Origin: Macrostomum lignano
Lineage: Eukaryota
Length of the DNA stretch: 64,000 bases
Reading direction: 5' to 3'
Assembly (NCBI GenBank): GCA_002269645.1
Contig: NIVC01000755.1
Location: 186,001-250,000 of the forward strand
The position numbers were made by a program, and so were the translations under genes. Below are positions 871 through 35,939 of this stretch, one piece after another; the first letter of the stretch is position 1, and every line of letters starts with the position of its first letter. The notes below the pieces were generated by a model. The model had not been told where the DNA came from. It saw only the letters and a list, made by a program, of their open reading frames with translations, and ran no database searches.

Positions 871-949
871 ATAAGTAGCTAGTGCGACAATTTCCTTAGC
901 ATTATAGTGGCTCCTTTAAAATTCGCTCACTTTTACGTTTGAAATTGTG

Positions 950-4860: not shown

Positions 4861-4909
4861 ATGTTTAGCAGTTTTTTGTTTTTAAGGTGTTTTAATAAAA
4901 AAATCATTT

Positions 4910-4977
4910 TGCGCTACCAAGATTCGAACCCAGGTCGCTACATTAGCAGTCCAGTCTGTTCGCATCTAGGCTATCTT
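4910..4977 (-). pseudogene. Degenerate tRNA-derived sequence (SINE-head-like, Ser-GCT-like loop)
   Basis: Minus strand reads TAGCCTAGATG (A-box-like), CTGCTAA (anticodon-loop-like) and GGTTCGAATC (B box). The acceptor stem is not intact. Confidence 0.5.
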
Positions 4978-5746
4978 TTTACAATTGGAGCACATGAATT
5001 GTGGCCCTTATAATTCAATTCTTACAGCAAGTCGGTTAGAGTAAAATTTTATGACATAATGAATTTCTCAGTCAGCCAGTATCAGTCTTAATTTAAGTTA
5101 GCAATATTGTTACGCAATTTTAATCAAGTCTTGTGTGCGTTTCTGTGGCACTGTTTTCACCTTGTTGTGATGCAATCTTTATCACAATTGAAATTCATCC
5201 AGTCAGTTTTTTCTCTAGCATTCTTACAATGCATTTCAAGTCGAAAATTTTGCTTGACCTTTGCAAAAAAGCATGTTTTTCGAATATTTAATCCCTTTAA
5301 AATTGAGCAATTTCTTAGCCAAGATGCATGTACCGTCCCAGGAAATTTTCTGATCGAATGGTGCAAGTTTGAAGAAAATCGGTTGAGCCATTTTTTCCGA
5401 AATCTATCGCATACCTACCCACATACAGACAACTCATTTTTAGTATATAGGATTTTCTCTAATCGATCACATAGATAGATAGATAGATAGACACAGACAG
5501 ACCATTTTTAGTATATAGGACTAGCAATCTACGCCCCCCGTTGGGGAGCCAAAGAAATGCAATCGCTACACGTTTTTTTAATAAGCTACATGTATCCTTG
5601 AAATCTTAAAAAATCTCCTGTCAAACCTTGTAAGCCTTGACATGTCAGTAATTCCCCACCACAAGCTTTAACATATCAACTCCCCCCTTGACATCTCAGC
5701 AATGCCCCCAATAAGCCTTGGAAATCTAAAAATATCTGTCAACCTT

Positions 5747-5814
5747 CTAACCCTAACCCTAGCCTAACCCTAACCCTAACCCTAACCCTAACCCTAACCC
5801 TAACCTAACCCTAA
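5747..5814. repeat. Interstitial telomere-type repeat (CCCTAA)n
   Basis: About 11 near-perfect units. Homologous tract at 15271-15361. Confidence 0.9.
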
Positions 5815-6729
5815 AGCATTGACATTTCAGTAATTCTCTCTAAGAGTCATTATAGCACTGCTACAGCATTATAGCGATTTCCTGCAAGCCTCGACATCGT
5901 AGGGATTCCCAAATGAATCTCTTAACTTCGACATGAAGCTTCTTTTATTTTTTACATTACGCTTTTTTATCAGCGATCCCTCCCCTGAGGAGGCATCAAA
6001 TAATGTAATAAAAAGTTTTCAATAAACTTTACATGATTGTTTACATGTAGCTTCTGACTTTAGCTTTGAAATCTCATTTATACCCCGTGAGCCTTGACAT
6101 CTCAGCTATTCCCCCCGTAAGCCTTGACATGTCAGCGATGGCCTCCATAAACCTTGAAATCTGAAAAATCCCCGTTAACCTTGAAACCCGATAAAATATA
6201 ACCCTCAACCCACACCTGACCTAAACCTAACTTTAACCCAACCTAAAGCCTTGAATCTCAGCAATTCTTCTCCCCTAAGCCTTGACATTTTAGTGATTCC
6301 TTCTTTAAGAATCACAGCACTGTAACGATTCCCTCCAAGCTTTGACATCATAGCAATTCCCAAATGAATCTTTTAACTTCGACATGACTTTTCTTTTATG
6401 TATACATAGTGCTACTTTTATTTTTTACATGACTCTTCTTCTATCAGCGACCCCCCCCGTGGCGAGCCAACAAAGAATGTAATAAAAAAATTGAGTAAAG
6501 TACATGAACTTTGAAGTAGCTTCTGACTTTTGCTTTGACATCTCAGCAACCCCCCCCCGTAATCTCAGTTATTCTCTGAGAGCCTTAACGTCTCAGTTTT
6601 TCTCCCCAGCACAGCATTATAGCTGCATTTATTTTTACATGACACCCTTCATGTCTGACATGACGCTTCTTTTATTCTACCATGATGCTTCTTAATTTTT
6701 TAAATGACACTTTCCTTAGTTTTTAAATG

Positions 6730-9700
6730 AGGCTTCTATGATTTTTTCATGACGCTTCTATGATTTTAACATGACGCTTCTATGACTTTTTTTACATGAC
6801 GCTTCTATGATTTTTTCTTGACGCTTCTATAATTTTTACATGACGCTTCTATGATTTTTTACATGACGCTTCTATGATTGTTTACATGACGCTTCTCTGA
6901 TTGTTTACATGACGCTTCTATGATTTTTTATAATAACGCTTTCTATGATTTTTAAATGACGCTTCTACGATTTTTTACATGACGCTTCTATGATTGTTTA
7001 CATGACGCTTCTATGATTGTTTACATGACGCTTCTATGATTTTTACATGACGCTTCTATGATTGTTTACATGACGCTTCTATGATTGTTTACATGACGCT
7101 TCTATGATTCATTACATGACGCTTCTATGATTTTTTACATGACGCTTCTATGATTGTTTACATGACGCTTCTATGATTGTTTACATGACGCTTCTATGAT
7201 TGTTTACATGACGCATCTATGATTTTTATGACGCTCTATGATTTTATATGACGCTTCTATGATTTTTACATGACGCTTCTATGATTGTTTACATGACGCT
7301 TCTATGATTTTTTACATGGCGCTTCTATGATTGTTTACATGACGCTTCTATGATTGTTTCATGACGCTTCTATGATTGTTTACATGACGCTTCTATGATT
7401 GTTTCATGACGCTTCTATGATTGTTTACATGACGCTTCTATGATTTTTATATGACGCTTCTATGATTGTTTACATGACGCTTCTATGATTTTTATATGAC
7501 GCTTCTATCATTTTTACATAACGCTTCTATGATTTTTATATGACGCTTCTATGATTGTTTACATGATGCTTCTATGATTTTTACATGGCGCTTCTATGAT
7601 TGTTTACATGACGCTTCTATGATTGTTTACATGACGCTTCTAGATTGTTTACATGACGCTTCTATGATTGTTTACATGACGCTTCTAGATTGTTTACATA
7701 ACGCTTCTAGGATTGTTTACATGACGCTTCTATGATTGTTTACATGACGCTTCTATGATTGTTTCATGACGCTTCTATGATTGTTTACATGACGCTTCTA
7801 TGATTGTTTACATGACGCTTCTACGATTTTGGCAGGATGATTCTATGATTTTACATGACGCTTCTATGATTTTTACATGACGCTTCTATGATTGTTTACA
7901 TGACGCTTCTATGATTCATTACATGACGCTTCTATGATTTTTTACATGACGCTTCTATGATTGTTTACATGACGCTTCTATGATTGTTTACATGACGCTT
8001 CTATGATTGTTTACATGACGCTTCTATGATTTTTATATGACGCTTCTATGATTTTTATATGACGCTTCTATGATTTTTACATGACGCTTCTATGATTGTT
8101 TACATGACGCTTCTATGATTTTTTACATGACGCTTCTATGATTGTTTACATGACGCTTCTATGATTGTTTCATGACGCTTCTATGATTGTTTACATGACG
8201 CTTCTATGATTGTTTCATGACGCTTCTATGATTGTTTACATGACGCTTCTATGATTTTTATATGACGCTTCTATGATTGTTTACATGACCCTACTATGAT
8301 TTTTTATATGACGCTTCTATCATTTTTACATACGCTTCTATGATTTTTATATGACGCTTCTATGATTGTTTACATGATGCTTCTATGATTTTTACATGGC
8401 GCTTCTATGATTGTTTACATGACGCTTCTATGATTGTTTACATGACGCTTCTAGATTGTTTACATGACGCTTCTATGATTGTTTACATGACGCTTCTAGG
8501 ATTGTTTACATAACGCTTCTAGATTGTTTACATGACGCTTCTATGACTGTTTACATGACGCTTCTATGATTGTTTCATGACGCTTCTATGATTGTTTACA
8601 TGACGCTTTAAGGATTTTTTACATGACGCTTCTACGATTTTGGCAGGATGATTCTATGATTTTACATGACGCTTCTATGATTTTTACATGACGCTTCTAT
8701 GATTTTTTACATGACGCTTCTACGATTTTGGCAGGACGATTCTACGATTTTACATGACGCTTCTATGATTTTTACATGACGCTTCTATGATTTTACATGA
8801 CGCTTCTATGATTTTTACATGACGCTTCTACGATTTTTACATGACGCTTCTATGATTTTTTACATGACGCTTCTATGATTGTTTCATGACGCTTCTATGA
8901 TTTTTACATGACGCTTCTATGATTGTTTACATTCTTCTGTGCTTGTTTACATGACGCTTCTATGATTGTTTAAATGACGCTTGAATGATTGTTTACATGA
9001 CGCTTTTATGATTTTTACATGGCGCTTCTATGATTGTTTACATGACGCTTCTATGATTGTTTACATGACGCTTCTATGATTGTTTACATGACGCTTCTAT
9101 GATTGTTTACATGACGCTTCTATGATTTTTACATGACGTTTCTATGATTGTTTCATGACGCTTCTATGATTGTTTACATGACGCTTCTATGATTTTTACA
9201 TGACGCTTCTATGATTGTTTACATGGCGCTTCTAAGATTGTTTACATGACGCTTCTATGATTGTTTCATGACGCTTCTATGATTGTTTACATGACGCTTC
9301 TATGATTTTGACATGACGCTTCTATGATTGTTTACATGACGCTTCTATGATTTTTACATGACGCTTCTATGCTTGTTTACATGACGCTTCTATGATTGTT
9401 TACATGACGCTTCTATGATTTTTACATGACGCTTCTATGATTGTTTAAATGACGCTTGAATGATTGTTTACATGACGCTTCTATGATTGTTTAAATGACG
9501 CTTGAATGATTGTTTACATGACGCTTTTATGATTTTTACTTGGCGCTTCTATGATTGTTTACATGACGCTTCTATGATTGTTTACATGACGCTTCTAGGA
9601 TTGTTTACATGACGCTTCTATGATTGTTTACATGACGCTTCTAGGATTGTTTACATGACGCTTCTAGATTGTTTACATGACGCTTCTATGATTGTTTACA

Positions 9701-10070
9701 TGACGCTTCTATGATTGTTTCATGACGCTTCTATGATTGTTTACATGACGCTTCTATGATTTTTACATGACGCTTCTATGATTGTTTATATGACGCTTCT
9801 ATGATTGTTTACATGACGCTTCTATGATTGTTTCATGACGCTTCTATGATTGTTTCATGACGCTTCTATGATTGTTTACATGACGCTTCTATGATTTTGA
9901 CATGACGCTTCTATGATTGTTTACATGACGCTTCTATGATTGTTTACATGACGCTTCTATGATTTTTACATGGCGCTTCTATGATTGTTTACATGCTTCT
10001 ATGATTTTTTAAATGACGCATCTATGATTTTTATATGACGCTTCTATGATTTTTACATGACGCTTCTTTT
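6730..10070. repeat. 22-23-bp minisatellite (ACATGACGCTTCTATGATTGTTT)n
   Basis: Direct reading. Same family as 16270-18472. Confidence 0.97.
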
Positions 10071-10629
10071 TAAAAAGTCTTTTAGTTTTCCTGACGTTGA
10101 AAAGCTTTAATTGAAAAAATTATATTCTATGAAAATTCGAACCATCGTCGCTGCATTTATCAAATTTTGCACATATATATATAATTCAACAGTTTAAAAT
10201 CCAAGCATAGAGTAAATCACACGAAGCAGTTATGACATAATCAGTTTCTCAGTCAGTCAGTATCAGTTAACAATATGGTTACGCAATTTAAATCAAGTCT
10301 GGTGCTACGCTTCCACACTGCATTTTCAATTCAAGTCGGAGTTACAATTCAGTTATGATGCAATATATTTCAGAGTCAGAATTCAACCAGTCAGTTTTTT
10401 CTCTAGCATTCTTACAATGCATTTCAAGTCGAAAAGTTTGCTTGACCTTTGCAAAAAAGCATGTTTTTCGTATATTTAATGCCTTTAGCATCGAGCAATT
10501 TCTTAGCCACGATGCATGTACCGTCACGGGAAAATTTCTGATCGAACAGTGCAAGTTCGAACAAAATCGGTCCAGCCATTTTTTCTCTAATCTATCACAT
10601 ATATATAGACATCACATTTTTAGTATATA

Positions 10630-13408
10630 CGAGGCCAACTCCTCCTCTGGAGGAGAAAGGGGAAGAATTCCCATCACCGGAACTCCATTCCCTGAAATGC
10701 TATTCCCTGAATCCCATCATCCAACTCCTCTCCGCGAAACTGAACATCATCGAAATCCTCTCCGTAAAAGAGAACTCCATCAAACACCTCTCCGTGAAAC
10801 TGACATTCATCAAAATCCTCTCCGAGAAACAGAAATCCTTTCCGTGAAACTGGACTCCATGGAAATCCTCTGCGTGAAACTGACATCCATCAAAATCGTC
10901 TCCGCGAAACAGAAATTCTCTCCATAAAACTGGACTGAATTGAAATTTTCTCCGTCAAAAAGAATCAACTCTCAGGATTTAGTGGTTAGGGTTAGGGTTA
11001 GGGTTAGAGCTACAACGCAGCAGCGTGTTGAAAGGCGCCGATAAAAAATTGAACCAATTGAATTCATTGAATGCGCAACCGATTTCACAGTCAGTCAGTA
11101 TCAGTCTCGGTAAAAGTTAACAAAAAGATTGCGCAAACTAAATCAACCCTCCAATACACAGCGACTGACCCCCTTCCAATACGCAGTGGCAATTAAAAGT
11201 TGAACCCCCCCCCCTCCCACCAACTGTTGGGGGGGTTGGTCGAACCCCCATTGAACTCCAGAATGAGTACACTGCAGAAAGTTAAAAGTATGGAAATCGT
11301 TTTTTAAATGCTGTGCTTTTTTGTTTGCACATTTAAAGCAAACAACTTATATCCCCGAACTGAGTATTGCAAGATCTTTCCAGCAATATAAGTCTCTCCT
11401 CTGAAAGTTTAAAACTCGAGGAACAGTTAGCGTTTGAAATTTCCTGATTTAAAGCATTGAAGTATCGAGTGTACGTTCACTGCCTGCTAAAGAGGCTCGC
11501 AAGTTTATTCATTGAATTTTACTGCCCAGCAAATACACATGGCTGCCTATTGAATGTCGCCGATAATAAAACCAATTAAATCTCGACACAGTCCTAGCTA
11601 TCTCCTTACACTGTACAACTGCTATGTACACTCAGCCCAAGCCCAACTCCCCATTTCGGGGGGAATCGTTAAATTTAATTGAACCCCGCGGGGGAGGGTT
11701 ATTTGCATTGAACGCGGAACACGCGCACCCACCACCCCTCAATACACAGCGGCCCGCGGGCGGAGGTTGGGGTGGCTATTTTTACAAACTGGCTGCAGCC
11801 CCAGGCAGAGTGGCCAAAGAAGGTTATTGAGGGTTAAAAAAAAAACAGTTTTCTGCTTTTTAGGGATCTTAAAATGTAAAAATGAAAGATTAAAATAGCT
11901 ATAAACCCAATCCGGAAAATTTGCAGTTTTCCCAAATAAGTTTCAACGCTGACTTGCCAGTAGTCTAGGAGAAAAATTGCAACACACAAACAAACATCGC
12001 ACCAGTTTTAGTATTAACGAGGCCAACTCCTCCTCTGGAGGAGAAAGGGGAAGAATTCCCATCACCGGAACTCCATTCCCTGAAATGCCATTCCCTGAAT
12101 CCCATCATCCAACTCCTCTCCGCGAAACTGAACATCATCGAAATCCTCTCCGTAAAAGATAACTCCATCAAACACCTCTCCGTGAAACTGACATTCATCA
12201 AAATCCTCTCCGAGAAACAGAAATCCTCTCCGTTAAACTGGACTTCATGGAAATCCTCTGCGTGAAACTGACATCCATCAAAATCGTCTCCGCGAAACAG
12301 AAATTCTCTCCTTAAAACTGGACTGAATCGAAATTTTCTCCGTCAAAAAGAATCAACTCTCAGGATTTAGTGGTTAGGGTTAGGGTTAGGGTTAGAGCTA
12401 CAACGCAGCAGCGTGTTGAAAGGCGCCGATAAAAAATTGAACCAATTAAATTCATTGAATGCGCAACCGATTTCACAGTCAGTCAGTATCAGTCTCGGTA
12501 AAAGTTAACAAAAAGATTGCGCAAACTAAATCAACCCTTCAATACACAGCGACTGACCCCCTTCCGCAGTGGCAATTAAAAGTTGAACCGCCCCTCCCCT
12601 CCCACCAACTGTTCGGGGGTTGGTCGAACCCCCATTGAACTCCAAAATGAGTAACACTGCAGAAAGTTAAAAGTATGGAAATCGTTTTTTAAATGCTGTG
12701 CTTTTTGTTTTCACATTTAAAGCAAACAACTTATATCCCGAACTCAGCGTTGCAAGATCTTTCCAGCAATGTAAGTCTCTCCTCTGAAAGTGTAAAACTT
12801 GAGGAACAGTTAGCGTTTGAAATTTCCTGATTTAAAGCATTGAAGTATCGAGTGTACGTTCACTGCCTGCTAAAGAGGCTCGCAAGTTTATTCAATGAAT
12901 TTTACTGCCCAGCAAATACACATGGCTGCCTATTGAATGGCGCCGATAATAAAACCAATTAAATCTCGACACAGTCCTAGCTATCTCCTTACACTGTACA
13001 ACTTCTATGTACACTCAGCCCAAGCCCAACCCCCCATTCCGGGGGGAATCGTTAAATTTAATTGAACCCCTAACACGCGGGGGGGGGTTTGCATTGAACG
13101 CGGAACACGCGCACTCACCCCCCCCCCAAAAACACAGCGACCCGCGGGCGGAGGTTGGGGTGGCTATTTTTACAAACTGGCTGCAGCCCCAGGCAGAGTG
13201 GCCAAAGAAGGTTATTGAGGGTTAAAAAAACAGTTTTCTGCTTTTTTAGGGATCTTAAAATGTAAAAATGAAAGAGTAAAATAGCTATAAACCCAATCCG
13301 GAAAATTTGCAGTTTTCCCATATAAGTTTCAACGCTGACTTGCCAGTAGTCTAGGAGAAAAATTGCAACACACAAACAAACATCGCACCACTTTTAGTAT
13401 TAAGAGAG
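10630..13408 (+). mobile_element. Tandem pair (period ~1388 bp) of a second Helentron-like element type
   Basis: 10630-12017 and 12018-13408 are near-identical. Each starts with a CTCCTCC-TCT-GGAGGAG hairpin, has 22-bp degenerate repeats and (TTAGGG)3-4 (10985-11007; 12373-12395), and ends CACAAACAAACATCGCACCA..TTTTAGTATT. Confidence 0.55.
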
Positions 13409-13486
13409 GATTTGCAGTCAAGTCAAAGTCAACCTAACTAGCTCAACGCAAACAGTAACGCGTACAGTCCAGCTTGACTCTATATA

Positions 13487-13762
13487 CTCAGCAACATTGA
13501 AAAGTCGCCACTCTATGCGCCAGTGATCAATTTCTCTTGGACTATTCTGAAATAAAAGATGCCAGAAAAACTGATCGGGGTAGCTTTAATCCGTCCAAAC
13601 CTCGCACACCGCTCCCCCACTCCATTCCTCAACTCAAGTCTGCCGGTGGCGTAGCTGAGTTGCGTCACTCGCAAATATTGAGAAAGACTTTACCTGCACT
13701 CTCTCAAAAGTGGCGACCACAGACGGAATCTTCTGTGATGCCGACTTTTCAATGTTGCTGAG
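13487..13762. mobile_element. 276-bp MITE-like element (24-bp TIR, TA flanks) in the 5S-SL spacer
   Basis: CTCAGCAACATTGAAAAGTCG(C/G)CA inverted at both ends, flanked by TA. Confidence 0.75.
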
Positions 13763-14068
13763 TATAATTAATTCATTGTTGGCGCCATCAACAAAGTTGT
13801 ACATGTACATATGCACATCCGCACGCATAGAGCGATCTAAGAAATTACATTTGATTATTGCAACTCGAAGAGATCTAGTATAGCCTGCACTCTGTACACG
13901 GCGATGCATATGCGCGCTATATCATGCTATGCTATGCTATGGTGCAACAACTAATTTACAACTTGCGGGTAAATAGAATATGTTTAAAATAATAGTAGGA
14001 CACGCTAAATCCAGAATTGCAATCAACCAACTATAATTAATTAATGTTTGTCTTTAGCTTTGTTAGGC

Positions 14069-14179
14069 AGCCGCGGTAGCGCGGCTTGTCAAAAATTGAG
14101 TAGACCGCTCAATTGGATCCACGCGGTGTCTTACCATGCAAAATTAAGAGTCTTCGCAGTAAGAGACCGTCGATACGGC
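14069..14179 (-). ncRNA. Spliced-leader RNA gene (leader variant ...TCTTAATTTTGCATG)
   Basis: 45-nt exon ending ATG, GTAAG donor, Sm site AATTTTTGA, terminal hairpin AGCCGCG-CTAC-CGCGGCT. Confidence 0.88.
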
Positions 14180-14747
14180 AAAGAGACGAGCTGGAACCAG
14201 CTCTCACTGATTGCACAGCTCTCCGTTTGAGCCTCGAGCCCTAGGGCAAATTATTTTGTTGAACTTTATCTACTCCAAGTAAGTTTTGACGACTAGTGCA
14301 GCATTATTTTGCACTACAGCTTGAAAAGAGCTGCGCGAAAAAGTATTTCTTTCTTTTAGCCGACATGTTTAGAAAGTGTGCACACAAACGCGCCGCCTAA
14401 TTGATTGATTAATTGATTGCTGCTATAAATCAAGTAAAATTGCCATGTGAGAGATGGAGATACTCGTAAAACTATTAATACACAGTTCATAAGTGCATTA
14501 GCGTTGCCGCGTGCTAATGCAAAGTGCGCATACAAAATATGAAACGCGAATCGAATCCCTTGACTTGATGGAGTGAGTGGAGTGGAACTCGAAAGGAATC
14601 AGCAGACCTATGCCGTATGGTAAAAATTCAAGCAGCATCCGGTTGGCGGGCGCGGGCGGATTGGTGGGCCTGGGCCTAAGTATTAATGCAGTAGCAGCAG
14701 CTGGAGTTAGTTGATGAGCGCGCGGCATGCAGTTAAAGAGGCAAAAA

Positions 14748-14866
14748 AGACAACAGCATTTGGTATTCCCAGGCGGTCACCCATCCAAGTACTAACCAAA
14801 CCCAACGTTGCTTAACTTCGGTGATCAGACGAGAACCGGTGTTTTCAACGTGGTATGGCCGTTGCC
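14748..14866 (-). rRNA. 5S rRNA gene
   Basis: 119 nt, GGCAACGGCCATACC...AGTACTTGGATGGGTGACCGCCTGGGAATACC..., followed by an oligo-T terminator. Confidence 0.97.
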
Positions 14867-15047
14867 ACTGGCTGATAGGAGCTGAGCTCATAATTAACCT
14901 GAACCTGCAGCTACATGTATATACGGACCATACGGTACGGATCAATTGTGGGCCGCCTCTCGTCTATACTCTAATAAATATATAATTAGTAATGCGGACG
15001 GATTTACCGCGCTCGTATAGTATATAGTAAACTATAGTGGTGATTAG

Positions 15048-18000
15048 ACTAGCAATCTACGCCCCCCGTTGGGGAGCCAAAGAAATGCAATACACGTTTT
15101 TTTAATAAGCTACATGTATCCTTGAAATCTTAAAAAATCTCCTGTCAAACCTTGTAAGCCTTGACACGTCAGTAATTCCCCCCACAAGCTTTAACATATC
15201 AACTCCCCCCCCTGACATCTCAGCAATGCCCCCAATAAGCCTTGAAAATCTAAAAATATCTGTCAACCTTCTAACCCTAATCCAAACCTAACCCTAACCC
15301 TAACCCTAGCCTAACCCTAGCCCTAACCCTAACCCTAACCCTAACCCTAACCTAACCCTAAAGCATTGAAATTTCAGTAATTCTCTCTAAGAGTCATTAT
15401 AGCACTACTACAGCATTATTGCGATTCCCTGCAAGCCTCGACATCGTAGGGATTCCCAAATGAATCTCTTAACTTCGACATGAAGCTTCTTTTATTTTTT
15501 ACATTACGCTTTTTTTATCAGCGATCCCTCCCCTGAGGAGGCATCAAATAATGTAATAAAAAGTTTTCAATAAACTACATGTAGCTTCTGGCTTTAGCCT
15601 TGAAATCTCATTTATACCCCAGTGAGCCTTGACATCTCAGCTATTCCCCCCGTAAGCCTTGACATGTCAGCGATGGCCCCCATAAACCTTGAAATCTAAA
15701 AAATCCCCTGTTAACCTTGAAACCCGATAAAATATAACCCTCAACCCACACCTGACCTAAACCTAACTTTAACCCAACCTAAAGCCTTGAAATCTCAGCA
15801 ATTCTTCTCCCCTAAGCCTTGACATTTTAGTGATTCCTTCTTTAAGAATCACAGCACTATAACGATTTCCACCAAGCTTTGACATCGTAGCAATTCCCAA
15901 ATGAATCTTTTAACTTCGACATGACCTTTCTTTTATGTATACTTAGTGCTACTTTTATTTTTTACATGACTCTTCTTCTATCAGCGCCTCCCCCCGTGGC
16001 GAGCCAACAAAGAATGCAATAAAAAATTGAGTAAAGTACATGAACTTTGAAGTAGCTTCTGACTTTTGCTTTGACATCTCAGAACCACCCCCCCCCCCGT
16101 AATCTCAGTTATTCTCTGAGAGCCTTGACGTCTCAGTTTTTCTCCCCAGCACAGCATTATAGCTGCATTTAATTTTTACATGACACCTTCATGTCTGACA
16201 TGACGCTTCTTTTATTCTACCATGATGCTTCTTAATTTTTTAAATGACACTTTCATTAGTCTTTAAATGAGGCTTCTATGATTTTTCATGACGCTTCTAT
16301 GATTTTTACATGATGCTTCTATGATGTTTATATGACGCTTCTATGATTTTTACATGACGCTTCTATGATTTTTTACATGACGCTTCTTTGATTTTTACAT
16401 GACGCTTCTATGATTGTTTACATGACGCTTCTATGATTGTTTGCACGACGCTTCTATGATTGTTTACATGACGCTTCTATGGTTTTTACATGACGCTTAT
16501 ATTTTTTACATGACGCTTCTATGATTGTTTAGATGACGCTTCTATGATTTTTTCATGACGCTTCTATGATTTTTACATGACGCTTCTATGATTGTTTACA
16601 TGACGCTTCTATGGCTTTTACATGACGCTTATATTTTTTACATGACGCTTCTATGATTGTTTACATGACGCTTCTATGATTGTTTACATGACGCTTCCAT
16701 GATGTTTATATGACGCTTCGATGATTTTTTACATGACGCTTCTATGATTGTTTACATGACGCTTCTATGATGTTTATATGACGCTTCTATGATTTTTTAC
16801 ATGACGCTTCAATGATTTTTACGTGACGCTTCTATGATTTTTTACATGACGCTTCTATGCTTTTTATATGACGCTTCTATGATTGTTTATATGACGTTTC
16901 TATAGTTTTTACATGACGCTTATATTTTTTACATGACGCTTCTATGATTGTTTACATGACGCTTCTATGATTTTTTCATGACGCTTCTATGATTTTTTAC
17001 ATGACGCTTCTATGATTGTTTACATGACGCTTCTATGGTTTTTACATGGCGCTTATATTTTTACATAACGCTTTTATGATTGTTTACATGACGCTTCTAT
17101 GATTTTTTACATGACGCTTCTATGATTGTTTACATGACGCTTCTATGATTTTTTACATGACGCTTCTATGATTGTTTACATGACGCTTCTATGATTTTTT
17201 ACATGACGCTTCTATGATTGTTTACATGACGCTTCTATGATGTTTACATGACGCTTCTATGATTTTTACATGACGCTTCTATGATTGTTTACATGACGCT
17301 TCTATGATTTTTACGTGATGCTTCTATGATGGTTTACATGATGCTTCTATGATTGTTTACATGACGCTTCTATGATTGTTTACATGACGCTTATATGATT
17401 TTTTCATGACGCTTCTATGATTTTTTACATGACGCTTCTATGATTGTTTACATGACGCTTCTATGGTTTTTACATGACGCTTATATTTTTACATGACGCT
17501 TCTATGATTGTTTACATGACGCTTCTATGATTGTTTACATGACGCTTCTATGATGTTTATATGACGCTTCTATGATTTTTTACATGACGCTTCTATGCTT
17601 TTTACATGACGCTTCTATGATTATTTCATGACGCTTCTACGATTTCTGCAGGACGCTTCTATGATTTTTACATGACGCTTCTATGATTTTTACATGACGC
17701 TTCTATGATTGTTTACATGACGCTTCTATGATTGTTTACATGACGCTTCTATGATTGTTTATATGACGCTTCTATTATTTTTACATGACGCTTCTAAGAT
17801 TTTTTACATGACGCTTCTATGATTGTTTACATGACGCTTCGATGATTGTTTACATGACGCTTCTATGATTTTTACATGACGCTTCTATGACTATTTACAT
17901 GACGCTTCTATGATTTTTACATAACGCTTTTATGATTTTTTACATGACGCTTTTATGATTTTTTACATGACGCTTCTATGATTGTTTACATGACGCTTCT

Positions 18001-18472
18001 ATGATTGTTTACATGACGCTTCTATGATTTTTTACATGACGCTTCTATGATTTTTACATGACGCTTCTATGACTATTTACATGACGCTTCTATGATTTTT
18101 ACATAACGCTTTTATGATTTTTTACATGACGCTTCTAGGATTGTTTACATGACGCTTCTATGATTGTTTACATGACGCTTCTATGATTGTTTACATGACG
18201 CTTCTATGATTTTTTACATGACGCTTCTATGATTTTTACATGACGCTTCTATGATTGTTTACATGACGCTTCTATGATTGTTTAAATGACGCTTCTATGA
18301 TTGTTTACATGATGCTTCTATGATTTTTTACATGACGCTTCTATGATTTTTACATGACGCTTCTATGATTGTTTACATGACGCTTCTATGATTGTTTACA
18401 TGACGCTTCTATGATTGTTTACATGACGCTTCTATGATTTTTACATAACGCTTTTATGATTTTTTACATGAC
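15048..18472 (+). mobile_element. Helentron-like element, near-copy of element C, truncated by the 5S-SL array
   Basis: Same ACTAGCAATCTACGCCCCCCGTTGGGGAGCC start, (CCCTAA)n at 15271-15361 and same minisatellite. The 3' module is missing. Confidence 0.55.
16270..18472. repeat. 22-23-bp minisatellite (ACATGACGCTTCTATGATTGTTT)n
   Basis: Direct reading. Joins abruptly to 5S-SL spacer sequence at 18473. Confidence 0.97.
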
Positions 18473-18719
18473 ATAGCAGCAATCAATTAATCAATCAATT
18501 AGGCGGCGCGTTTGTGTGCACACTTTCTAAACATGTCGGCTAAAAGAAAGAAATACTTTTTCGCGCAGCTCTTTTCAAGCTGTAGTGCAAAATAATGCTG
18601 CACTAGTCGTCAAAACTTACTTGGAGTAGATAAAGTTCAACAAAATAATTTGCCCTAGGGCTCGAGGCTCAAACGGAGAGCTGTGCACTCAGTGAGAGCT
18701 GGTTCCAGCTCGTCTCTTT

Positions 18720-18830
18720 GCCGTATCGACGGTCTCTTACTGCGAAGACTCTTAATTTTGCATGGTAAGACACCGCGTGGATCCAATTGAGCGATCTACT
18801 CAATTTTTGACAAGCCGCGCTACCGCGGCT
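18720..18830 (+). ncRNA. Spliced-leader RNA gene (variant ...TCTTAATTTTGCATG)
   Basis: Exon 18720-18764, GT donor, AATTGAG/CTCAATT hairpin, Sm site AATTTTTGA, 3' hairpin. Confidence 0.88.
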
Positions 18831-18896
18831 GCCTAACAAAGCTAAAAACAAACATTAATTAATTATAGTTGGTTGATTGCCGTATCGACGGTCTCT

Positions 18897-20156
18897 GACT
18901 GTTTTTACCCTGGTTGCCTTCTGGTAGCTTGTCTAAGGGTTGTGCGCAATCCGATTGGCTATGCCAATTTCAAAGGGTCCGCCCCGGAGGGGCTGTGCCT
19001 GTTCTAAAAATAAACCCTATTCTTTTTTCTAATTTCGGCCCTCGGCCTTGGTTTAGGGGGGGTGGTGCCCGGAGTGAGTAGGTTCTCTGGACTGCAGTGT
19101 GGCTAGGACGGGACTGAGCCCCCCGGTCGAACCCGCCCTGCAGGAAAGAACGACCAATTCACAAAGGTGTACGGTAGACCCAGTAGCATGCCAGCCCTGA
19201 GGCTGAGCACCCGGGCTGCAGGCCGGCAAGCTGCCTGCTTTAGGGCTATGGTGCTCCTCCCCACTGCCATTCTTTTTTTCTGGGCTGGCATCCCAGCGCT
19301 GTTTTATCCCTAGCTTTGTGCCTTTGTGGCTTTTTATTCTTTTATTCTTTTATCTGGCCAATAGAAGCCTTCCAATTCTTGGAGTTATGAGCTCTGCCCT
19401 TGCCCGGTCCATCTTGCCCTGTCCTCGGGTCCATCTCCTGGCTCCTGCTGTAAGGTCCCTGCTTGCGTGTCTCTGGCTCTCATCCTGACAGTGGATTGGT
19501 GTCCTGGGAAGGATGTTCGTCCCGTACCGGGGACAACCGGCTGAGTCCGGAGTCCTCTTGCCCTGGGTGCCTCTTCTCCCGACCCCTTGGCCTGGCCCCC
19601 AATAATGAGCTGGATAGGCGATGCCCTTGGGTTGGTAGCAATAGAGGTGGACCTGGACGCCTGGAGTCTCCCCCTCGGATACAAGCCTTCCAGACTCACT
19701 CCAAAATAGAGCTGGGTAGTGAAAAGCCTTGAGGCTCGAGGCCTGCAGTTACCGAGTGCTGTATAGGATCGCTCTTGGTTAATAGCTGCCCAGACTCTCT
19801 CCAATAGTTAGCCCCTTTCCAAGACTTCTGGGTTTCCCCGCTCTTGGACGGCTTTTTCAGTAATTCCAATTCTGTTTTTTTCGCGCACTCCCGAGGACCT
19901 GTCTGCTGGGGGGTGGCCTGGGTGGACTCGGTCCTAGCACCGTCCCTGATTCCACTGTTTGGGTTGGCGGTGTCTTGTACCGTAGGTTTGGGTCAAATTC
20001 GCCCCCCCCGCGCTTTGAGCCGGGTCCAATCCAATCCATGGGGTATCTCGGGCCCTGGACAGATACTGCCTTGGCCCCTGGAAGTGCCCCTCGCGGCAGA
20101 GCCCACCCCAGGGCTGATCCGCGGGTCCCCCTAGGACCCTTTCGTTTAACAACAAC
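18897..20156 (+). mobile_element. 1260-bp non-autonomous non-LTR-retrotransposon-like insertion inside an SL exon
   Basis: ATCGACGGTCTCT duplicated at 18884-18896 and 20157-20169. The 3' end is hairpin GGGTCC-CCCTA-GGACCC plus TTTAACAACAAC. No RT ORF seen. Confidence 0.78.
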
Positions 20157-20262
20157 ATCGACGGTCTCTTACTGCGAAGACTCAATATTTTGCATGGTAA
20201 GACACCGCGTGGATCCAATTGAGCGATCTACTCAATTTTTGACAAGCCGCGCTACCGCGGCT
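20157..20262 (+). pseudogene. Disrupted SL RNA gene (nt 6-111; nt 1-18 lie at 18879-18896)
   Basis: SL sequence resumes at ATCGACGG directly after the AAC tail and lacks its first 5 nt and upstream flank. Confidence 0.85.
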
Positions 20263-20568
20263 GCCTAACAAAGCTAAAGACAAACATTAATTAATTATAG
20301 TTGGTTGATTGCAATTCTGGATTTAGCGTGTCCTACTATTATTTTAAACATATTCTATTTACCCGCAAGTTGTAAATTAGTTGTTGCACCATAGCATAGC
20401 ATAGCATGATATAGCGCGCATATGCATCGCCGTGTACAGAGTGCAGGCTATACTAGATCTCTTCGAGTTGCAATAATCAAATGTAATTTCTTAGATCGCT
20501 CTATGCGTGCGGATGTGCATATGTACATGTACAACTTTGTTGATGGCGCCAACAATGAATTAATTATA

Positions 20569-20844
20569 CTCAGCAACATTGAAAAGTCGGCATCACAGAA
20601 GATTCCGTCTGTGGTCGCCACTTTTGAGAGAGTGCAGGTAAAGTCTTTCTCAATATTTGCGAGTGACGCAACTCAGCTACGCCACCGGCAGACTTGAGTT
20701 GAGGAATGGAGTGGGGGAGCGGTGTGCGAGGTTTGGACGGATTAAAGCTACCCCGATCAGTTTTTCTGGCATCTTTTATTTCAGAATAGTCCAAGAGAAA
20801 TTGATCACTGGCGCATAGAGTGGCGACTTTTCAATGTTGCTGAG
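20569..20844. mobile_element. 276-bp MITE-like element in spacer (also 22202-22477, 23835-24109, 25467-25742)
   Basis: 24-bp TIR with 1 mismatch and TA on both sides, present in every unit. Confidence 0.75.
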
Positions 20845-21097
20845 TATATAGAGTCAAGCTGGACTGTACGCGTTACTGTTTGCGTTGAGCTAGTTAGGTT
20901 GACTTTGACTTGACTGCAAATCACCACTATAGTTTACTATATACTATACGAGCGCGGTAAATCCGTCCGCATTACTAATTATATATTTATTAGAGTATAG
21001 ACGAGAGGCGGCCCACAATTGATCCGTACCGTATGGTCCGTATATACATGTAGCTGCAGGTTCAGGTTAATTATGAGCTCAGCTCCTATCAGCCAGT

Positions 21098-21216
21098 GGC
21101 AACGGCCATACCACGTTGAAAACACCGGTTCTCGTCTGATCACCGAAGTTAAGCAACGTTGGGTTTGGTTAGTACTTGGATGGGTGACCGCCTGGGAATA
21201 CCAAATGCTGTTGTCT
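21098..21216 (+). rRNA. 5S rRNA gene
   Basis: 119 nt; helix I pairs GGCAACGGC with GCTGTTGTC; boxes A and C present; TTTTTT terminator. Confidence 0.98.
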
Positions 21217-21784
21217 TTTTTGCCTCTTTAACTGCATGCCGCGCGCTCATCAACTAACTCCAGCTGCTGCTACTGCATTAATACTTAGGCCCAGGCCCAC
21301 CAATCCGCCCGCGCCCGCCAACCGGATGCTGCTTGAATTTTTACCATACGGCATAGGTCTGCTGATTCCTTTCGAGTTCCACTCCACTCACTCCATCAAG
21401 TCAAGGGATTCGATTCGCGTTTCATATTTTGTATGCGCACTTTGCATTAGCACGCGGCAACGCTAATGCACTTATGAACTGTGTATTAATAGTTTTACGA
21501 GTATCTCCATCTCTCACATGGCAATTTTACTTGATTTATAGCAGCAATCAATTAATCAATCAATTAGGCGGCGCGTTTGTGTGCACACTTTCTAAACATG
21601 TCGGCTAAAAGAAAGAAATACTTTTTCGCGCAGCTCTTTTCAAGCTGTAGTGCAAAATAATGCTGCACTAGTCGTCAAAACTTACTTGGAGTAGATAAAG
21701 TTCAACAAAATAATTTGCCCTAGGGCTCGAGGCTCAAACGGAGAGCTGTGCACTCAGTGAGAGCTGGTTCCAGCTCGTCTCTTT

Positions 21785-21895
21785 GCCGTATCGACGGTCT
21801 CTTACTGCGAAGACTCAATATTTTGCATGGTAAGACACCGCGTGGATCCAATTGAGCGATCTACTCAATTTTTGACAAGCCGCGCTACCGCGGCT
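21785..21895 (+). ncRNA. Spliced-leader RNA gene (variant ...TCAATATTTTGCATG)
   Basis: GCCGTATCGACGGTCTCTTACTGCGAAGACTCAATATTTTGCATG|GTAAG, Sm site, 3' hairpin. Confidence 0.9.
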
Positions 21896-22730
21896 GCCTA
21901 ACAAAGCTAAAGACAAACATTAATTAATTATAGTTGGTTGATTGCAATTCTGGATTTAGCGTGTCCTACTATTATTTTAAACATATTCTATTTACCCGCA
22001 AGTTGTAAATTAGTTGTTGCACCATAGCATAGCATAGCATGATATAGCGCGCATATGCATCGCCGTGTACAGAGTGCAGGCTATACTAGATCTCTTCGAG
22101 TTGCAATAATCAAATGTAATTTCTTAGATCGCTCTATGCGTGCGGATGTGCATATGTACATGTACAACTTTGTTGATGGCGCCAACAATGAATTAATTAT
22201 ACTCAGCAACATTGAAAAGTCGGCATCACAGAAGATTCCGTCTGTGGTCGCCACTTTTGAGAGAGTGCAGGTAAAGTCTTTCTCAATATTTGCGAGTGAC
22301 GCAACTCAGCTACGCCACCGGCAGACTTGAGTTGAGGAATGGAGTGGGGGAGCGGTGTGCGAGGTTTGGACGGATTAAAGCTACCCCGATCAGTTTTTCT
22401 GGCATCTTTTATTTCAGAATAGTCCAAGAGAAATTGATCACTGGCGCATAGAGTGGCGACTTTTCAATGTTGCTGAGTATATAGAGTCAAGCTGGACTGT
22501 ACGCGTTACTGTTTGCGTTGAGCTAGTTAGGTTGACTTTGACTTGACTGCAAATCACCACTATAGTTTACTATATACTATACGAGCGCGGTAAATCCGTC
22601 CGCATTACTAATTATATATTTATTAGAGTATAGACGAGAGGCGGCCCACAATTGATCCGTACCGTATGGTCCGTATATACATGTAGCTGCAGGTTCAGGT
22701 TAATTATGAGCTCAGCTCCTATCAGCCAGT

Positions 22731-22849
22731 GGCAACGGCCATACCACGTTGAAAACACCGGTTCTCGTCTGATCACCGAAGTTAAGCAACGTTGGGTTTG
22801 GTTAGTACTTGGATGGGTGACCGCCTGGGAATACCAAATGCTGTTGTCT
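22731..22849 (+). rRNA. 5S rRNA gene
   Basis: Same sequence as 21098-21216. Confidence 0.98.
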
Positions 22850-23417
22850 TTTTTGCCTCTTTAACTGCATGCCGCGCGCTCATCAACTAACTCCAGCTGC
22901 TGCTACTGCATTAATACTTAGGCCCAGGCCCACCAATCCGCCCGCGCCCGCCAACCGGATGCTGCTTGAATTTTTACCATACGGCATAGGTCTGCTGATT
23001 CCTTTCGAGTTCCACTCCACTCACTCCATCAAGTCAAGGGATTCGATTCGCGTTTCATATTTTGTATGCGCACTTTGCATTAGCACGCGGCAACGCTAAT
23101 GCACTTATGAACTGTGTATTAATAGTTTTACGAGTATCTCCATCTCTCACATGGCAATTTTACTTGATTTATAGCAGCAATCAATTAATCAATCAATTAG
23201 GCGGCGCGTTTGTGTGCACACTTTCTAAACATGTCGGCTAAAAGAAAGAAATACTTTTTCGCGCAGCTCTTTTCAAGCTGTAGTGCAAAATAATGCTGCA
23301 CTAGTCGTCAAAACTTACTTGGAGTAGATAAAGTTCAACAAAATAATTTGCCCTAGGGCTCGAGGCTCAAACGGAGAGCTGTGCACTCAGTGAGAGCTGG
23401 TTCCAGCTCGTCTCTTT

Positions 23418-23528
23418 GCCGTATCGACGGTCTCTTACTGCGAAGACTCTTAATTTTACATGGTAAGACACCGCGTGGATCCAATTGAGCGATCTACTCA
23501 ATTTTTGACAAGCCGCGCTACCGCGGCT
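23418..23528 (+). ncRNA. Spliced-leader RNA gene (variant ...TCTTAATTTTACATG)
   Basis: Same architecture; third leader variant. Confidence 0.88.
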
Positions 23529-24362
23529 GCCTAACAAAGCTAAAGACAAACATTAATTAATTATAGTTGGTTGATTGCAATTCTGGATTTAGCGTGTCCT
23601 ACTATTATTTTAAACATATTCTATTTACCCGCAAGTTGTAAATTAGTTGTTGCACCATAGCATAGCATAGCATGATATAGCGCGCATATGCATCGCCGTG
23701 TACAGAGTGCAGGCTATACTAGATCTCTTCGAGTTGCAATAATCAAATGTAATTTCTTAGATCGCTCTATGCGTGCGGATGTGCATATGTACATGTACAA
23801 CTTTGTTGATGGCGCCAACAATGAATTAATTATACTCAGCAACATTGAAAAGTCGGCATCACAGAAGATTCCGTCTGTGGTCGCCACTTTTGAGAGAGTG
23901 CAGGTAAAGTCTTTCTCAATATTTGCGAGTGACGCAACTCAGCTACGCCACCGGCAGACTTGAGTTGAGGAATGGAGTGGGGAGCGGTGTGCGAGGTTTG
24001 GACGGATTAAAGCTACCCCGATCAGTTTTTCTGGCATCTTTTATTTCAGAATAGTCCAAGAGAAATTGATCACTGGCGCATAGAGTGGCGACTTTTCAAT
24101 GTTGCTGAGTATATAGAGTCAAGCTGGACTGTACGCGTTACTGTTTGCGTTGAGCTAGTTAGGTTGACTTTGACTTGACTGCAAATCACCACTATAGTTT
24201 ACTATATACTATACGAGCGCGGTAAATCCGTCCGCATTACTAATTATATATTTATTAGAGTATAGACGAGAGGCGGCCCACAATTGATCCGTACCGTATG
24301 GTCCGTATATACATGTAGCTGCAGGTTCAGGTTAATTATGAGCTCAGCTCCTATCAGCCAGT

Positions 24363-24481
24363 GGCAACGGCCATACCACGTTGAAAACACCGGTTCTCGT
24401 CTGATCACCGAAGTTAAGCAACGTTGGGTTTGGTTAGTACTTGGATGGGTGACCGCCTGGGAATACCAAATGCTGTTGTCT
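24363..24481 (+). rRNA. 5S rRNA gene
   Basis: Same sequence as 21098-21216. Confidence 0.98.
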
Positions 24482-35937: not shown

Positions 35938-35939
35938 GT

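Follow-up and report, generated by a model that had tools for sequence, protein, structure and literature searches.

A complete, apparently functional 5S rRNA-SL RNA repeat unit lies inverted and by itself 3.4 kb from a tandem array of such units in the window (the whole 64,000-nucleotide stretch of Macrostomum lignano DNA analysed here), inserted between the 3' terminus of one repeat and the 5' terminus of another. Its exact one-unit length suggests arrival as a free monomer, probably a circle, and reintegration of a circle is the most economical reading of this single locus (n=1), though one that we hold only tentatively, at somewhat less than an even chance. The relevant features are the following:

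376-5517, + strand: repeat A', head to tail with the next copy, containing a long 23-bp satellite
5519-10629, + strand: repeat A, containing a long 23-bp satellite
10631-12017, + strand: repeat B1
12019-13403, + strand: repeat B2, forming with B1 a head-to-tail pair (95.6% identical)
13392-13403, + strand: 3' terminal motif TTTTAGTATTAA of B2
13404-13408, + strand: left-junction orphan nucleotides GAGAG
13409-15045, - strand: lone 5S-SL unit of 1633 bp with 4 nt of terminal redundancy, in the opposite orientation to the array
13409-13412, + strand: left GATT copy of the redundancy
14068-14179, - strand: SL RNA gene of the monomer (45-nt exon 14179-14135, GT donor 14134-14133)
14748-14866, - strand: 5S rRNA gene of the monomer (RF00001, 116.5 bits, full length)
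15042-15045, + strand: right GATT copy of the redundancy
15046, + strand: right-junction orphan nucleotide A
15047-18472, + strand: right copy of repeat A, with 5' terminus GACTAGCAATCTACGCCCCCCGTTGGGG, a (CCCTAA)n tract and the 23-bp satellite
18473-26561, + strand: parent-type 5S-SL tandem array, starting at unit position 620 against the A satellite

The solitary unit and its parent array

The first-pass annotation had described an exact copy of one unit in inverse orientation with a 4-nt terminal redundancy. The orientation, the length (1637 nt, the period being 1632-1633) and the GATT at both ends all hold, whereas "exact" slightly overstates the case, as 13409-15045 aligns with the reverse complement of 20919-22555 without gaps but with 5 mismatches. 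Individual array copies differ from the monomer at 4-5 positions, and BLAST against three successive array registers gave 99.70-99.76% identity. A 7-copy alignment of the 5S-SL units contained 10 variable columns; two substitutions in 1637 nt are private to the monomer (unit positions 835 and 941), with no indels, and its first 834 nt and last 696 nt are free of private changes. A 3-nt variant of the SL exon, TTA (positions 899-901), is common to the monomer, array copy c and the fragment 18473-18880.

An Rfam search (gathering score for RF00001, 38) located the array 5S genes at 21098, 22731, 24363 and 25996, all on the forward strand and scoring 116.5 bits each. Their spacing of 1633, 1632 and 1633 sets the unit period, from which it follows that the insert is one unit plus 4 nt. 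The array counterpart of the redundancy, ...GGTGATT|TGCAG..., occurs once per unit, and both monomer ends fall on this one spacer position, 179 nt upstream of the 5S gene. If the breakpoints are taken as independent, the chance of both lying within 4 nt of one unit position is 9/1633, or ~0.55%.

Both genes of the monomer had been described as looking intact, and our analysis agrees, the sequence upstream of each being intact as well. Its 5S gene is identical to all array copies, with no variable column inside the gene, and keeps 179 nt of native upstream spacer. The second gene of the unit, on the same strand of the 1.6-kb repeat, is recognizable by its sequence features as a Macrostomum-type flatworm SL RNA gene, bearing out the earlier "5S-SL" label. 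The exon form of most array copies (AATAT) matches the published Macrostomum SL at 41/45 positions, thus differing at 4/45, and the TTAAT form of the monomer at 38/45; a GT donor follows, then an Sm-like site (AAUUUUUGA in the monomer) and a 3' hairpin, and the SL RNA folds into three hairpins (z = -3.0). The monomer copy may be expressed.

The array is short, with about 5 units and arbitrary end phases; it has lost ~1.47 kb to a deletion, has acquired the Y1 insertion and is degenerate beyond 26545. It carries two SL-exon variants against just one in the monomer. The other two array/non-array junctions in the window are at unit positions 620 and about 745, unrelated to the monomer breakpoint site; ordinary rearrangement here has no preference for that site. 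None of the other four copies of that site (20919, 22552, 24184 and 25817) carries an insertion. Two retroelement-like insertions of the Y family (Y1 and Y2) were also observed within ~2 nt of one and the same position in the SL exon, in opposite orientations.

Junctions and flanking repeats

The left flank reads TTTTAGTATTAAGAGAG (13392-13408) and the right flank ACTAGCAATCTACG (at 15048), the right side of the insert being met by the 5' terminus GACTAGCAATCT of another repeat. The 5' motif GACTAGCAATCT.CGCCCCCCGTTGGGG also begins at 376 and 5519, each time right after a TTTTAGTATAT.. 3' motif. The ATATA/TTAA variant of the latter motif follows the upstream element, which identifies it as that element's 3' terminus. 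The insert had been placed at a boundary between 3' and 5' termini, and this location stands, but the element ends do not meet it cleanly, with 5 + 1 = 6 orphan nt around it as against 1 at ordinary element boundaries. Likewise, the motifs said to abut directly at 376 and 5519 are present there, but with 1 nt between them. A random insertion would fall within 5 nt of one of the 5 element boundaries in the ~17-kb chain with a chance of ~0.3%.

Neither the left nor the right junction showed microhomology on inspection. GAGAG together with the adjoining GATTT equals the reverse complement of AAATCCTCTC in the 80-bp repeats of B. This 10-nt stretch is possibly templated filler, at a significance of only ~0.01-0.1, and with about one such 10-mer match expected by chance in the whole window the resemblance is a weak hint. 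GATT is absent between the chained elements at the boundaries in the window.

A and B are non-coding, satellite-bearing repeats of otherwise different families that have only their termini in common. The chain that they form extends past the left edge of the window. B1 and B2 have diverged by 4.4%, and the right copy of A, which is cut off inside its own satellite where the array begins, is 93.4% identical to 5519-6657 (6.6% divergence). We do not retain the earlier description of these repeats as Helentron-like: subterminal inverted repeats and a 3'-proximal palindrome were looked for in the A/B elements and not found, the Rep, helicase and endonuclease families were not matched by any of the ORFs scanned, and ORFs outside the satellite arrays are at most 190 aa long. 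Given these results, a role for a Rep protein would be pure inference.

Origin of the solitary unit

In the favored scenario, recombination between neighboring units would have looped a monomeric circle out of the tandem array. A single cut in the spacer, 179 nt upstream of the 5S gene and staggered by 4 nt, would have opened it, and fill-in of both ends would account for GATT at each terminus. The outcome would be indistinguishable if identical staggered cuts in two neighboring units had set free a linear monomer instead. The free unit would then have been end-joined, inverted, into a chromosomal break with the B2 3' terminus on one side and the 5' terminus of A on the other. The existence of a free monomer or circle, a break at this boundary and its cause, and transfer from array to monomer are what we infer from the locus. 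Unit length and the shared, improbable spacer position of both ends support capture of a free monomer. A long-isolated unit should show edge decay, and the presence of just two private substitutions without such decay suggests that the monomer is young, next to flanking repeats diverged by 4.4% and 6.6% and an array whose right edge is degenerate. With no microhomology and 5 + 1 orphan nt the junctions resemble end joining rather than transposition, and the four unoccupied sibling sites argue against a strongly site-specific element. Unit-multiple 5S rDNA circles have been documented, and their reintegration has been proposed as a means of dispersal (PMC5437419, PMC10946416, citing Cohen et al. 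2003, 2010). On the other hand, capture does not by itself explain why the insert should sit a few nt from an element boundary, for which a fragile or enzymatically nicked site might be invoked; gene conversion by the array, 3.4 kb distant, could also account for the high identity, and the filler match is marginal.

The main rival, which we regard as possible but rather unlikely, explains the geometry nearly as well as circle reintegration. It supposes a former 5S-SL array of opposite orientation, in which the chain ending in B2, and A, inserted at the same spacer site of adjacent units, each with a 4-bp target-site duplication GATT, leaving one unit plus 4 nt between them; the rest of the inverted array would later have been lost and the A satellite joined to the present array by rearrangement. 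The position at element termini then comes free and the redundancy is read as a target-site duplication, matching the geometry exactly. 5S-SL DNA does lie on both sides of A, and the Y-family pair in the SL exon shows target-specific elements in the array. The best match of the unit to the 14-nt 3' terminus of A (11/14, with TAGTATATAG, in chain orientation) stops 18 nt before the breakpoint and is equalled by two matches on the opposite strand (p ~0.03). However, this history takes at least four events, as the same site must be hit by two insertions, the array inverted or arranged head to head, and sequence deleted, whereas with the chain beside the array capture needs one, and parsimony favors the latter. 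Furthermore, the window's four remaining copies of the site are empty, the absence of GATT between chained elements indicates that such a duplication is not their general habit, the 5 orphan nt behind B2 are left unexplained, and the unit lacks edge decay although B1 and B2 are 4.4% apart. An inversion also predicts a forward array ending at the same site beside an inverted A 3' end, which is not what we see. Since either reading leaves a unit with 4 extra nt flanked by a 3' end and a 5' end, our preference for capture at this single locus is slight.

Rolling-circle copying, raised as an option in the first-pass annotation, would account for unit length and target with one enzyme: a Rep-type transposase of the A/B families, if these are kin of Helitrons or Helentrons, would have nicked a pseudo-terminus in the 5S-SL spacer, displaced one unit up to the recurrence of the site in the next, and integrated the strand at a genuine 3'|5' terminus junction. 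The polarity of the insert places the 3'-terminus-like TAGTATATAG near its right end, and the head-to-tail chain has near-precise 3'|5' boundaries between otherwise different families with common termini. We nonetheless consider this improbable, as the Helentron hallmarks, matching ORFs among those scanned and any long ORF outside the satellite arrays are missing, the pseudo-terminus lies 18 nt inside the breakpoint, the other end has no 5'-like motif, and clean junctions would be expected instead of 6 orphan nt and a 4-nt overshoot. Very doubtful, too, is the reverse direction, with the solitary unit as progenitor of a circle that formed via the GATT direct repeat, was amplified and seeded the nearby array. 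Short flanking direct repeats are the usual substrate of microhomology-mediated circles and de novo tandem duplication, and the local array is short with arbitrary end phases; but tandem 5S-SL linkage reportedly goes far back and is found widely among flatworms and nematodes, there are two SL-exon variants in the array against one in the monomer, and the array edges look older. Template switching of the MMBIR/FoSTeS type, from a fork stalled at the element boundary to the inverted array and back, would have had a template that is close (5-12 kb) and inverted, as is typical of such events, and the 10 nt possibly templated from B, with GATTT as microhomology, would be in line with it. It would copy an arbitrary length, however (exactly one unit by chance in ~0.5%), and the right junction has no microhomology; we deem it highly unlikely. 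Equally small is the likelihood that chimeric joins in this region, dense in satellites and near-identical repeats, created the structure during assembly, as the sequence at both junctions is unique and offers no shared repeat for a mis-join, two independent chimeras bounding exactly one unit are improbable, and the copy has two private substitutions.

Comparison with known systems

Tandem 5S-SL linkage, said to have been described by Drouin and de Sa in 1995 and Brehm et al. in 2000, is reportedly old and widespread, occurring in nematodes, Echinococcus and others. It is also mentioned in a review (PMC10946416), and as in linked repeats elsewhere the two genes here share one strand of a single 1.6-kb tandem unit. 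On a Macrostomum-like metagenome contig (L002) an SL gene occurs without a 5S gene within 3 kb.

Target-specific elements inhabit several tandem arrays: R1/R2 in 28S genes, NeSL-1 in nematode SL1 genes and SLACS/CZAR in trypanosome SL genes. In such arrays, as here, the 3' end of one element and the 5' end of the next, in the same orientation, enclose one unit with a short duplication, and as with NeSL-1 and SLACS/CZAR this array has SL-exon insertions (Y1, Y2). R1/R2-type elements differ from A and B, for which the window offers no second insertion at this spacer site. The A and B repeats also lack coding capacity, carry satellites and follow one another head to tail with no target sequence in between, and the outer array context is missing or rearranged. 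Helentron/HINE elements such as DINE-1 and Cg_HINE are non-autonomous and move by a rolling-circle mode (PMC4067079, PMC7492417). A and B resemble them in several respects: they are non-coding, a satellite array occupies their center, a microsatellite-like tract lies close to one end and a short hairpin close to the 5' end, target duplications are not visible, and copies stand in tandem, head to tail. They differ in having no 11-15-bp subterminal inverted repeats common to both ends; the ~35 bp next to the 3' terminus contain no palindrome, a Rep partner is not visible, and the termini (GACTAGC... / ...TTTTAGTATATA) do not look like those described.

The locus resembles 5S rDNA extrachromosomal circles (PMC5437419, model iii, Esox; PMC10946416) in its tandem-array source, one-unit size, circularly permuted ends and dispersal of intact genes. 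Whereas those studies showed circles, or inferred mobility from cytogenetics or read classes, here we have an integrated product with junctions at base resolution. End joining can capture ectopic or extrachromosomal DNA at double-strand breaks and add filler nucleotides. The blunt junctions without microhomology, and the few orphan nt, possibly templated nearby, are in keeping with such events; what sets the locus apart is that precisely one unit, a whole two-gene cassette with the potential to function, would have been captured.

The solitary unit and its two genes

Direct comparison of 13409-15045 with the reverse complement of 20919-22555 gave a match of 1637 nt with 5 mismatches and 0 gaps, and by BLAST this inverted solitary copy (the monomer) was 99.70-99.76% identical to the plus-strand 5S-SL array in three successive registers. 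Given the gapless match and the array period of 1633/1632/1633 nt, the monomer amounts to one unit plus 4 nt (1633 + 4 nt), as the first-pass annotation had claimed. Both of its ends lie at unit position 1, and GATT is found at its start as well as its end, while in the array it is found once per unit (...GGTGATT followed by TGCAG...). An Rfam search detected five full-length 5S rRNA genes in the window, at 116.5 bits each, and the SL exon copies were located alongside them:

14748-14866 (-): 5S rRNA gene of the monomer, RF00001, 116.5 bits against a gathering score of 38, model positions 1-120
21098, 22731, 24363, 25996 (+): 5S rRNA genes of the array (Rfam), spacing 1633/1632/1633 nt
14148 (-): SL exon copy of the monomer
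18730, 20162, 21795, 23428, 25060: SL exon copies of the array, with exon variants

The 5S gene of the monomer is a member of RF00001 and has the same sequence as the four array copies. An alignment that took in the monomer, four-plus array copies and the fragment 18473-18880 contained only 10 variable columns. Two substitutions are private to the monomer, namely a C>A at 835 of the unit, which precedes the SL exon by ~30 nt, and an A>G at 941, which falls in the loop of SL hairpin II; in this alignment no difference from the array copies was seen in the 5S gene, the first 834 nt or the last 696 nt. A three-base exon variant, TTA, is common to the monomer, one array unit (copy c) and the fragment 18473-18880. 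The monomer 5S gene keeps 179 nt of its native upstream spacer and the upstream region of the SL gene is kept whole. The earlier description of both genes as intact is borne out by these retained regions and the unchanged 5S gene, and from their sequence both look functional.

No Rfam model matches the second gene of the unit, which reads GCCGTATCGACGGTCTCTTACTGCGAAGACTC(AATAT/TTAAT)TTTGCATG followed by GTAAGACACC...AATTTTTGA...GCCGCGCTACCGCGGC. The commoner exon form in the array, GCCGTATCGACGGTCTCTTACTGCGAAGACTCAATATTTTGCATG, is followed by GTAAG, providing the exon and GT donor expected of a flatworm SL RNA gene. The 45-nt exon of the AATAT form matches the SL assembled for Macrostomum cliftonense / M. 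hystrix at 41/45 positions and the M. lignano SL at 33/35; the TTAAT form, carried by the monomer, shows 38/45 identity. An Sm-like site, AAUUUUUGA, lies between the last two of three hairpins in the predicted SL RNA fold (MFE -37.3 kcal/mol, z = -3.0), and the gene is alignable to, and has the same layout as, an SL gene carried by a metagenome contig of Macrostomum-like origin (L002). By exon identity, GT donor, Sm site and predicted three-hairpin fold, the second gene is a flatworm spliced-leader RNA gene, and the label '5S-SL' used in the first-pass annotation is correct.

We also noted that this single short array holds two SL exon variants, ...GACTCAATATTTTGCATG and ...GACTCTTAATTTTGCATG, and that the copy at 23428 additionally has GCATG>ACATG at the exon 3' end. 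The published Macrostomum SL (GTAAAGAC / AATTTATTGC) differs from all exon variants of the window, and a literature search found none of these exact variants. By its SL, the DNA would belong to a macrostomid-type flatworm other than the three species whose leader has been published. A metagenome scan with the conserved SL core recovered one trans-spliced transcript and one SL locus, from a different Macrostomum-like species. The transcript (L001, Ga0316592_1034293) has the canonical Macrostomum SL at its start, joined to a zinc-knuckle (CNBP-like) coding sequence; it is a flatworm mRNA with a trans-spliced leader, found among environmental data. In each unit a ~280-bp segment (22198-22482; 13482-13766 in the monomer) lies downstream of the SL gene; its ends are inverted repeats adjoined on the outside by TA (TACTCAGCAA...TTGCTGAGTA), with AGTATATAG contained in one arm. 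A segment with matching inverted-repeat termini, likewise downstream of an SL gene, is present at 1137-1428 of L002. The segment could be a MITE with a TA duplication or a conserved functional element. A search with a unit ORF found no homologue, and five ORFs of the window had no exact product on record.

Flanking repeats and the state of the array

The left 27 kb of the window are a mosaic of satellite-bearing repeats and the short 5S-SL array. To the left of the monomer, repeats of two kinds, A and B, are chained head to tail, and a further A copy follows it:

376-5517: A', first of the chain
5519-10629: A, second in the chain
10631-12017: B1, third in the chain
12019-13403: B2, last in the chain, adjoining the left side of the monomer
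15047-18472: A-right, the A copy after the monomer

The A copies start with GACTAGCAATCT.CGCCCCCCGTTGGGG and the B copies with GAGGCCAACTCCTCCTCTGGAGGAG, a short hairpin being present at each 5' end; all copies have at their 3' end a microsatellite-like tract and then TTTTAGTAT(ATA/TAA). The form of this motif goes with the upstream element, ATATA following the A 3' region even before a B, and TTAA following B, and it is therefore the genuine 3' terminus. Satellites of 23 bp, spanning 2.3-3.9 kb, are found in A', A and A-right and 80-bp repeats in B, and (ACAC/ATAG)-like tracts precede the 3' terminus, so that the central tandem repeats and microsatellite of Helentrons are both present. Telomere-type (CCCTAA)n runs were noted ~250 nt from the A 5' end (5762-5803 and 15286-15350, +) and (TTAGGG)n runs ~360 nt from the B 5' end (10986-11009 and 12374-12397, -). 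In A' the 3' tail is duplicated (5438-5518), the full terminal motif TTTTAGTATATAG at 5438-5450 being succeeded by a second tail copy of ~68 nt (microsatellite plus TTTTAGTATATAG), which suggests slippage or re-initiation at the terminus.

Non-autonomous Helentrons are recognised by subterminal inverted repeats of 11-15 bp near both ends and a palindrome ~8-35 bp from the 3' terminus, usually with a central tandem array and microsatellite, and by T-rich or TT targets without duplication. When the first ~140 nt of A, A', B1 and B2 were compared with their last ~340 nt, no shared inverted 8-mer or longer was detected beyond chance AT-rich words. A by-eye reading of the terminal 60 nt at the 3' ends of A and B, made without a palindrome-finding tool, revealed no 3' palindrome, and the hairpins nearest to the 3' termini lie at least 75 nt inside. 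The 5' end of A-right comes after ...GATT, and the remaining visible A/B boundaries are element-to-element only. None of the scanned ORFs matched a Rep, helicase or endonuclease family, and the ORFs outside the satellites do not exceed 190 aa. The central arrays and microsatellite-like tracts agree with the earlier description of the flanks as Helentron-like, but no subterminal inverted repeats, 3' palindrome or Rep match came to light in these comparisons; judged on these sequence features, the name 'Helentron' is better used as a lead than as a class. The bodies of A and B are otherwise unrelated, and the sharing of termini alone, together with the head-to-tail chaining, points to a mobile family targeting element ends. 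Rolling-circle, tyrosine-recombinase and non-LTR-type mechanisms are all compatible with these elements. Ribozyme or other RNA-based element classes were rejected for A, B and the Y insertions described below, as Rfam, searched permissively across the full window (E up to 0.1), returned only the five 5S genes.

The array itself is damaged. A-right is truncated and meets it at unit position 620, in opposite orientation. The 408-bp 'fragment' 18473-18880 is the array start, leading into an SL exon after a ~1.47-kb deletion; this deletion (18873-18885) left unit position 1027 fused to the beginning of the following SL exon at a 4-nt microhomology, TTGC. The SL exon past the deletion is split by a 1.25-kb insertion, Y1, and the 156-bp 'duplication' (18725-18880 = 20157-20312) is a by-product of the deletion and the Y1 insertion. 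Towards its right end the array decays, leaving a diverged SL promoter and the start of an exon that is broken by a second insertion, Y2:

~18897-20156 (+): Y1, terminating in GTTTAACAACAACA, flanked by a 12-bp direct repeat TCGACGGTCTCT
~26612-26830 (-): Y2, reverse complement of a Y-type 3' end, colinear with the last ~245 nt of Y1

Taken with their surroundings, Y1 (18877-20172) and Y2 (26560-26830) are retroelement-like and represent one family in opposite orientations that interrupts SL exons, and their exon positions are within ~2 nt of each other (between GCCGTA and TCGACGG). No ORF with a Pfam match was seen in the Y insertions. Target-specific elements are known in rDNA and SL arrays, and Y looks like a flatworm element of the NeSL/SLACS type, specific for SL genes. 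Apart from a 21-nt SL-exon piece at the left end of Y1, no older 5S-SL relics were found elsewhere in the window.

Just beyond the array, at 27822-28100 (-), lies a transposase remnant, an ORF fragment matching PF21789 (RNase H C-terminal domain of TNP-like/P-element transposases) at E = 7e-5, slightly below the curated cut-off. At 35597-36450 two ORFs, recognised by eye, read like what we take to be consecutive DYRK-type kinase exons; these short ORF pieces gave no Pfam hit. They are followed, at 36-62 kb, by dozens of CT-rich, strongly strand-biased minisatellites, which are presumably intronic.

Origin of the solitary unit

Where chain elements ordinarily meet, their 3' and 5' termini are one nucleotide apart. 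The monomer has five orphan nucleotides at its left side (GAGAG, 13404-13408) and one at its right (A, 15046); its placement between a 3' end and a 5' end in the earlier description is correct to within a few nt. Microhomology with the would-be continuing array sequence is absent at both junctions. Two independent breakpoints would fall within 4 nt of one phase in 9/1633 cases (~0.55%), and a random insertion would fall within 5 nt of any of the chain's five boundaries in ~0.3%; both coincidences need a cause. The phases of the other two array/non-array junctions in the window, 620 and ~745, are unrelated. We noted that AAATCCTCTC, present three times in B2 ~1.2 kb upstream, is the reverse complement of GAGAG joined to GATTT. 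We estimate the chance of such a match at ~0.01 if the 5 + 5 split is taken as given and at ~0.1 if every junction-spanning 10-mer within 3 kb is counted, and a chance 10-mer hit also turns up once elsewhere in the window; the match is a weak hint that GAGAG may be templated filler. The similarity of the spacer breakpoint to the element termini is only marginal. A structure-prone breakpoint was rejected, as the DNA within ±40 nt of the spacer site, or of either junction, folded no more stably than shuffles (z -0.2 to +0.75).

We tentatively favor, at somewhat less than an even chance, the insertion of a free unit-length 5S-SL copy at a repeat boundary. A monomeric circle opened once, or a monomer freed by identical cuts in adjacent units, would have exact unit length; a 4-nt staggered cut with both ends filled in would yield GATT...GATT, and blunt joining with a few orphan nucleotides would produce the observed junctions. 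Derivation from a circle calls for an integer unit multiple with ends permuted to one site, and 1633 + 4 nt with both ends at one position is what was found. Insertion of a free copy is favored because a single event suffices, starting from a chain next to an array; because the monomer is pristine to its edges despite 4-7% divergence between B1 and B2 and among the A copies and the decay of the array's own edge; because the spacer site is uninterrupted in the four other copies of the window; and because of the weak hint of templated filler. The fuller reading, that the locus is a germline record at base resolution of a monomeric 5S-SL circle (or excised monomer) re-entering a nick-prone boundary between two rolling-circle-type repeats, is possible and a little more doubtful still. 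The interpretation put forward in the first-pass annotation is partly supported, by unit length, permuted ends and boundary position; the Helentron class and a Rep protein gain no support. The case is clean and testable, but it rests on one example with a strong rival.

That rival, in which the monomer is a unit of a former inverted array trapped between two same-site spacer insertions in adjacent units, each with a 4-bp duplication, is on balance somewhat less likely than the insertion of a free copy. It reproduces the geometry exactly and explains the position between element termini for free, and the Y insertions at one SL-exon position, which indicate that the array attracts target-specific elements, are relevant to it. 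Furthermore, in chain orientation the stretch of the unit that best matches the A 3' terminus (11/14, containing TAGTATATAG) ends 18 nt before the breakpoint, with p ~0.03 since two equally good matches exist on the other strand. However, trapping needs more events: one site must be hit twice, there must have been an inversion or else a head-to-head array, and a deletion is required as well. It gives no account of the orphan nucleotides, GATT is absent between chained elements, and none of the four other window copies is occupied at the spacer site. Of the outer flanks of the two insertions the window covers the right one, where the truncated A-right meets the array in opposite orientation; on the other side the chain runs on past the window's left edge. 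Rep-mediated rolling-circle mobilisation, the second idea of the first-pass annotation, would tie both coincidences to one enzyme, but lacks protein support and predicts clean junctions, and we regard it as improbable. The reverse direction, with the monomer as progenitor of the array, is unlikely, as are replicative template switching and an assembly artefact. Retroposition of a read-through transcript was rejected since there is no A-rich or simple-repeat tail, the ends are not at the Pol III terminator and non-transcribed spacer is included. A single inversion was likewise rejected, as in working by hand no breakpoint pair gave the present order without extra events, and the inverted A 3' end predicted after the array is absent.

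Comparison with known 5S mobility and implications

Circles of tandem repeats are well documented, and the chromosomal position and linkage partners of 5S rDNA and SL genes shift repeatedly in evolution. To our knowledge, integrated products with the circle signature of exact unit length and permuted ends have rarely been shown at the sequence level. For 5S rDNA, circles in unit multiples are an established finding, and it has been proposed that 5S loci spread when such circles reintegrate (PMC5437419, PMC10946416), and the linkage of 5S and SL genes is known (PMC10946416). Compared with the proposed eccDNA dispersal of 5S rDNA, the contribution of this locus is one integrated product of circle-type geometry, resolved to the base and lying at a repeat boundary; it joins a known, mostly hypothesised kind, provided that the reading as a free copy is right.

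If true, such re-entry of a monomeric circle or excised monomer at a repeat boundary would be a working route for intact Pol III/SL cassettes to leave the array and seed new loci, and would be direct evidence, at the sequence level, of the eccDNA route that has long been proposed for 5S rDNA mobility, with a link to transposon termini. If the origin from a circle holds, the locus would be a concrete, testable example in a flatworm lineage that serves as a regeneration model, and would suggest that boundaries of chained repeats are preferred entry points. If instead the unit was trapped, there would be a repeat family with a target preference for the 5S-SL spacer, a different and also useful result. 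On either reading, the copy contributes a 5S gene and an SL gene, one of each and apparently functional, outside the array.
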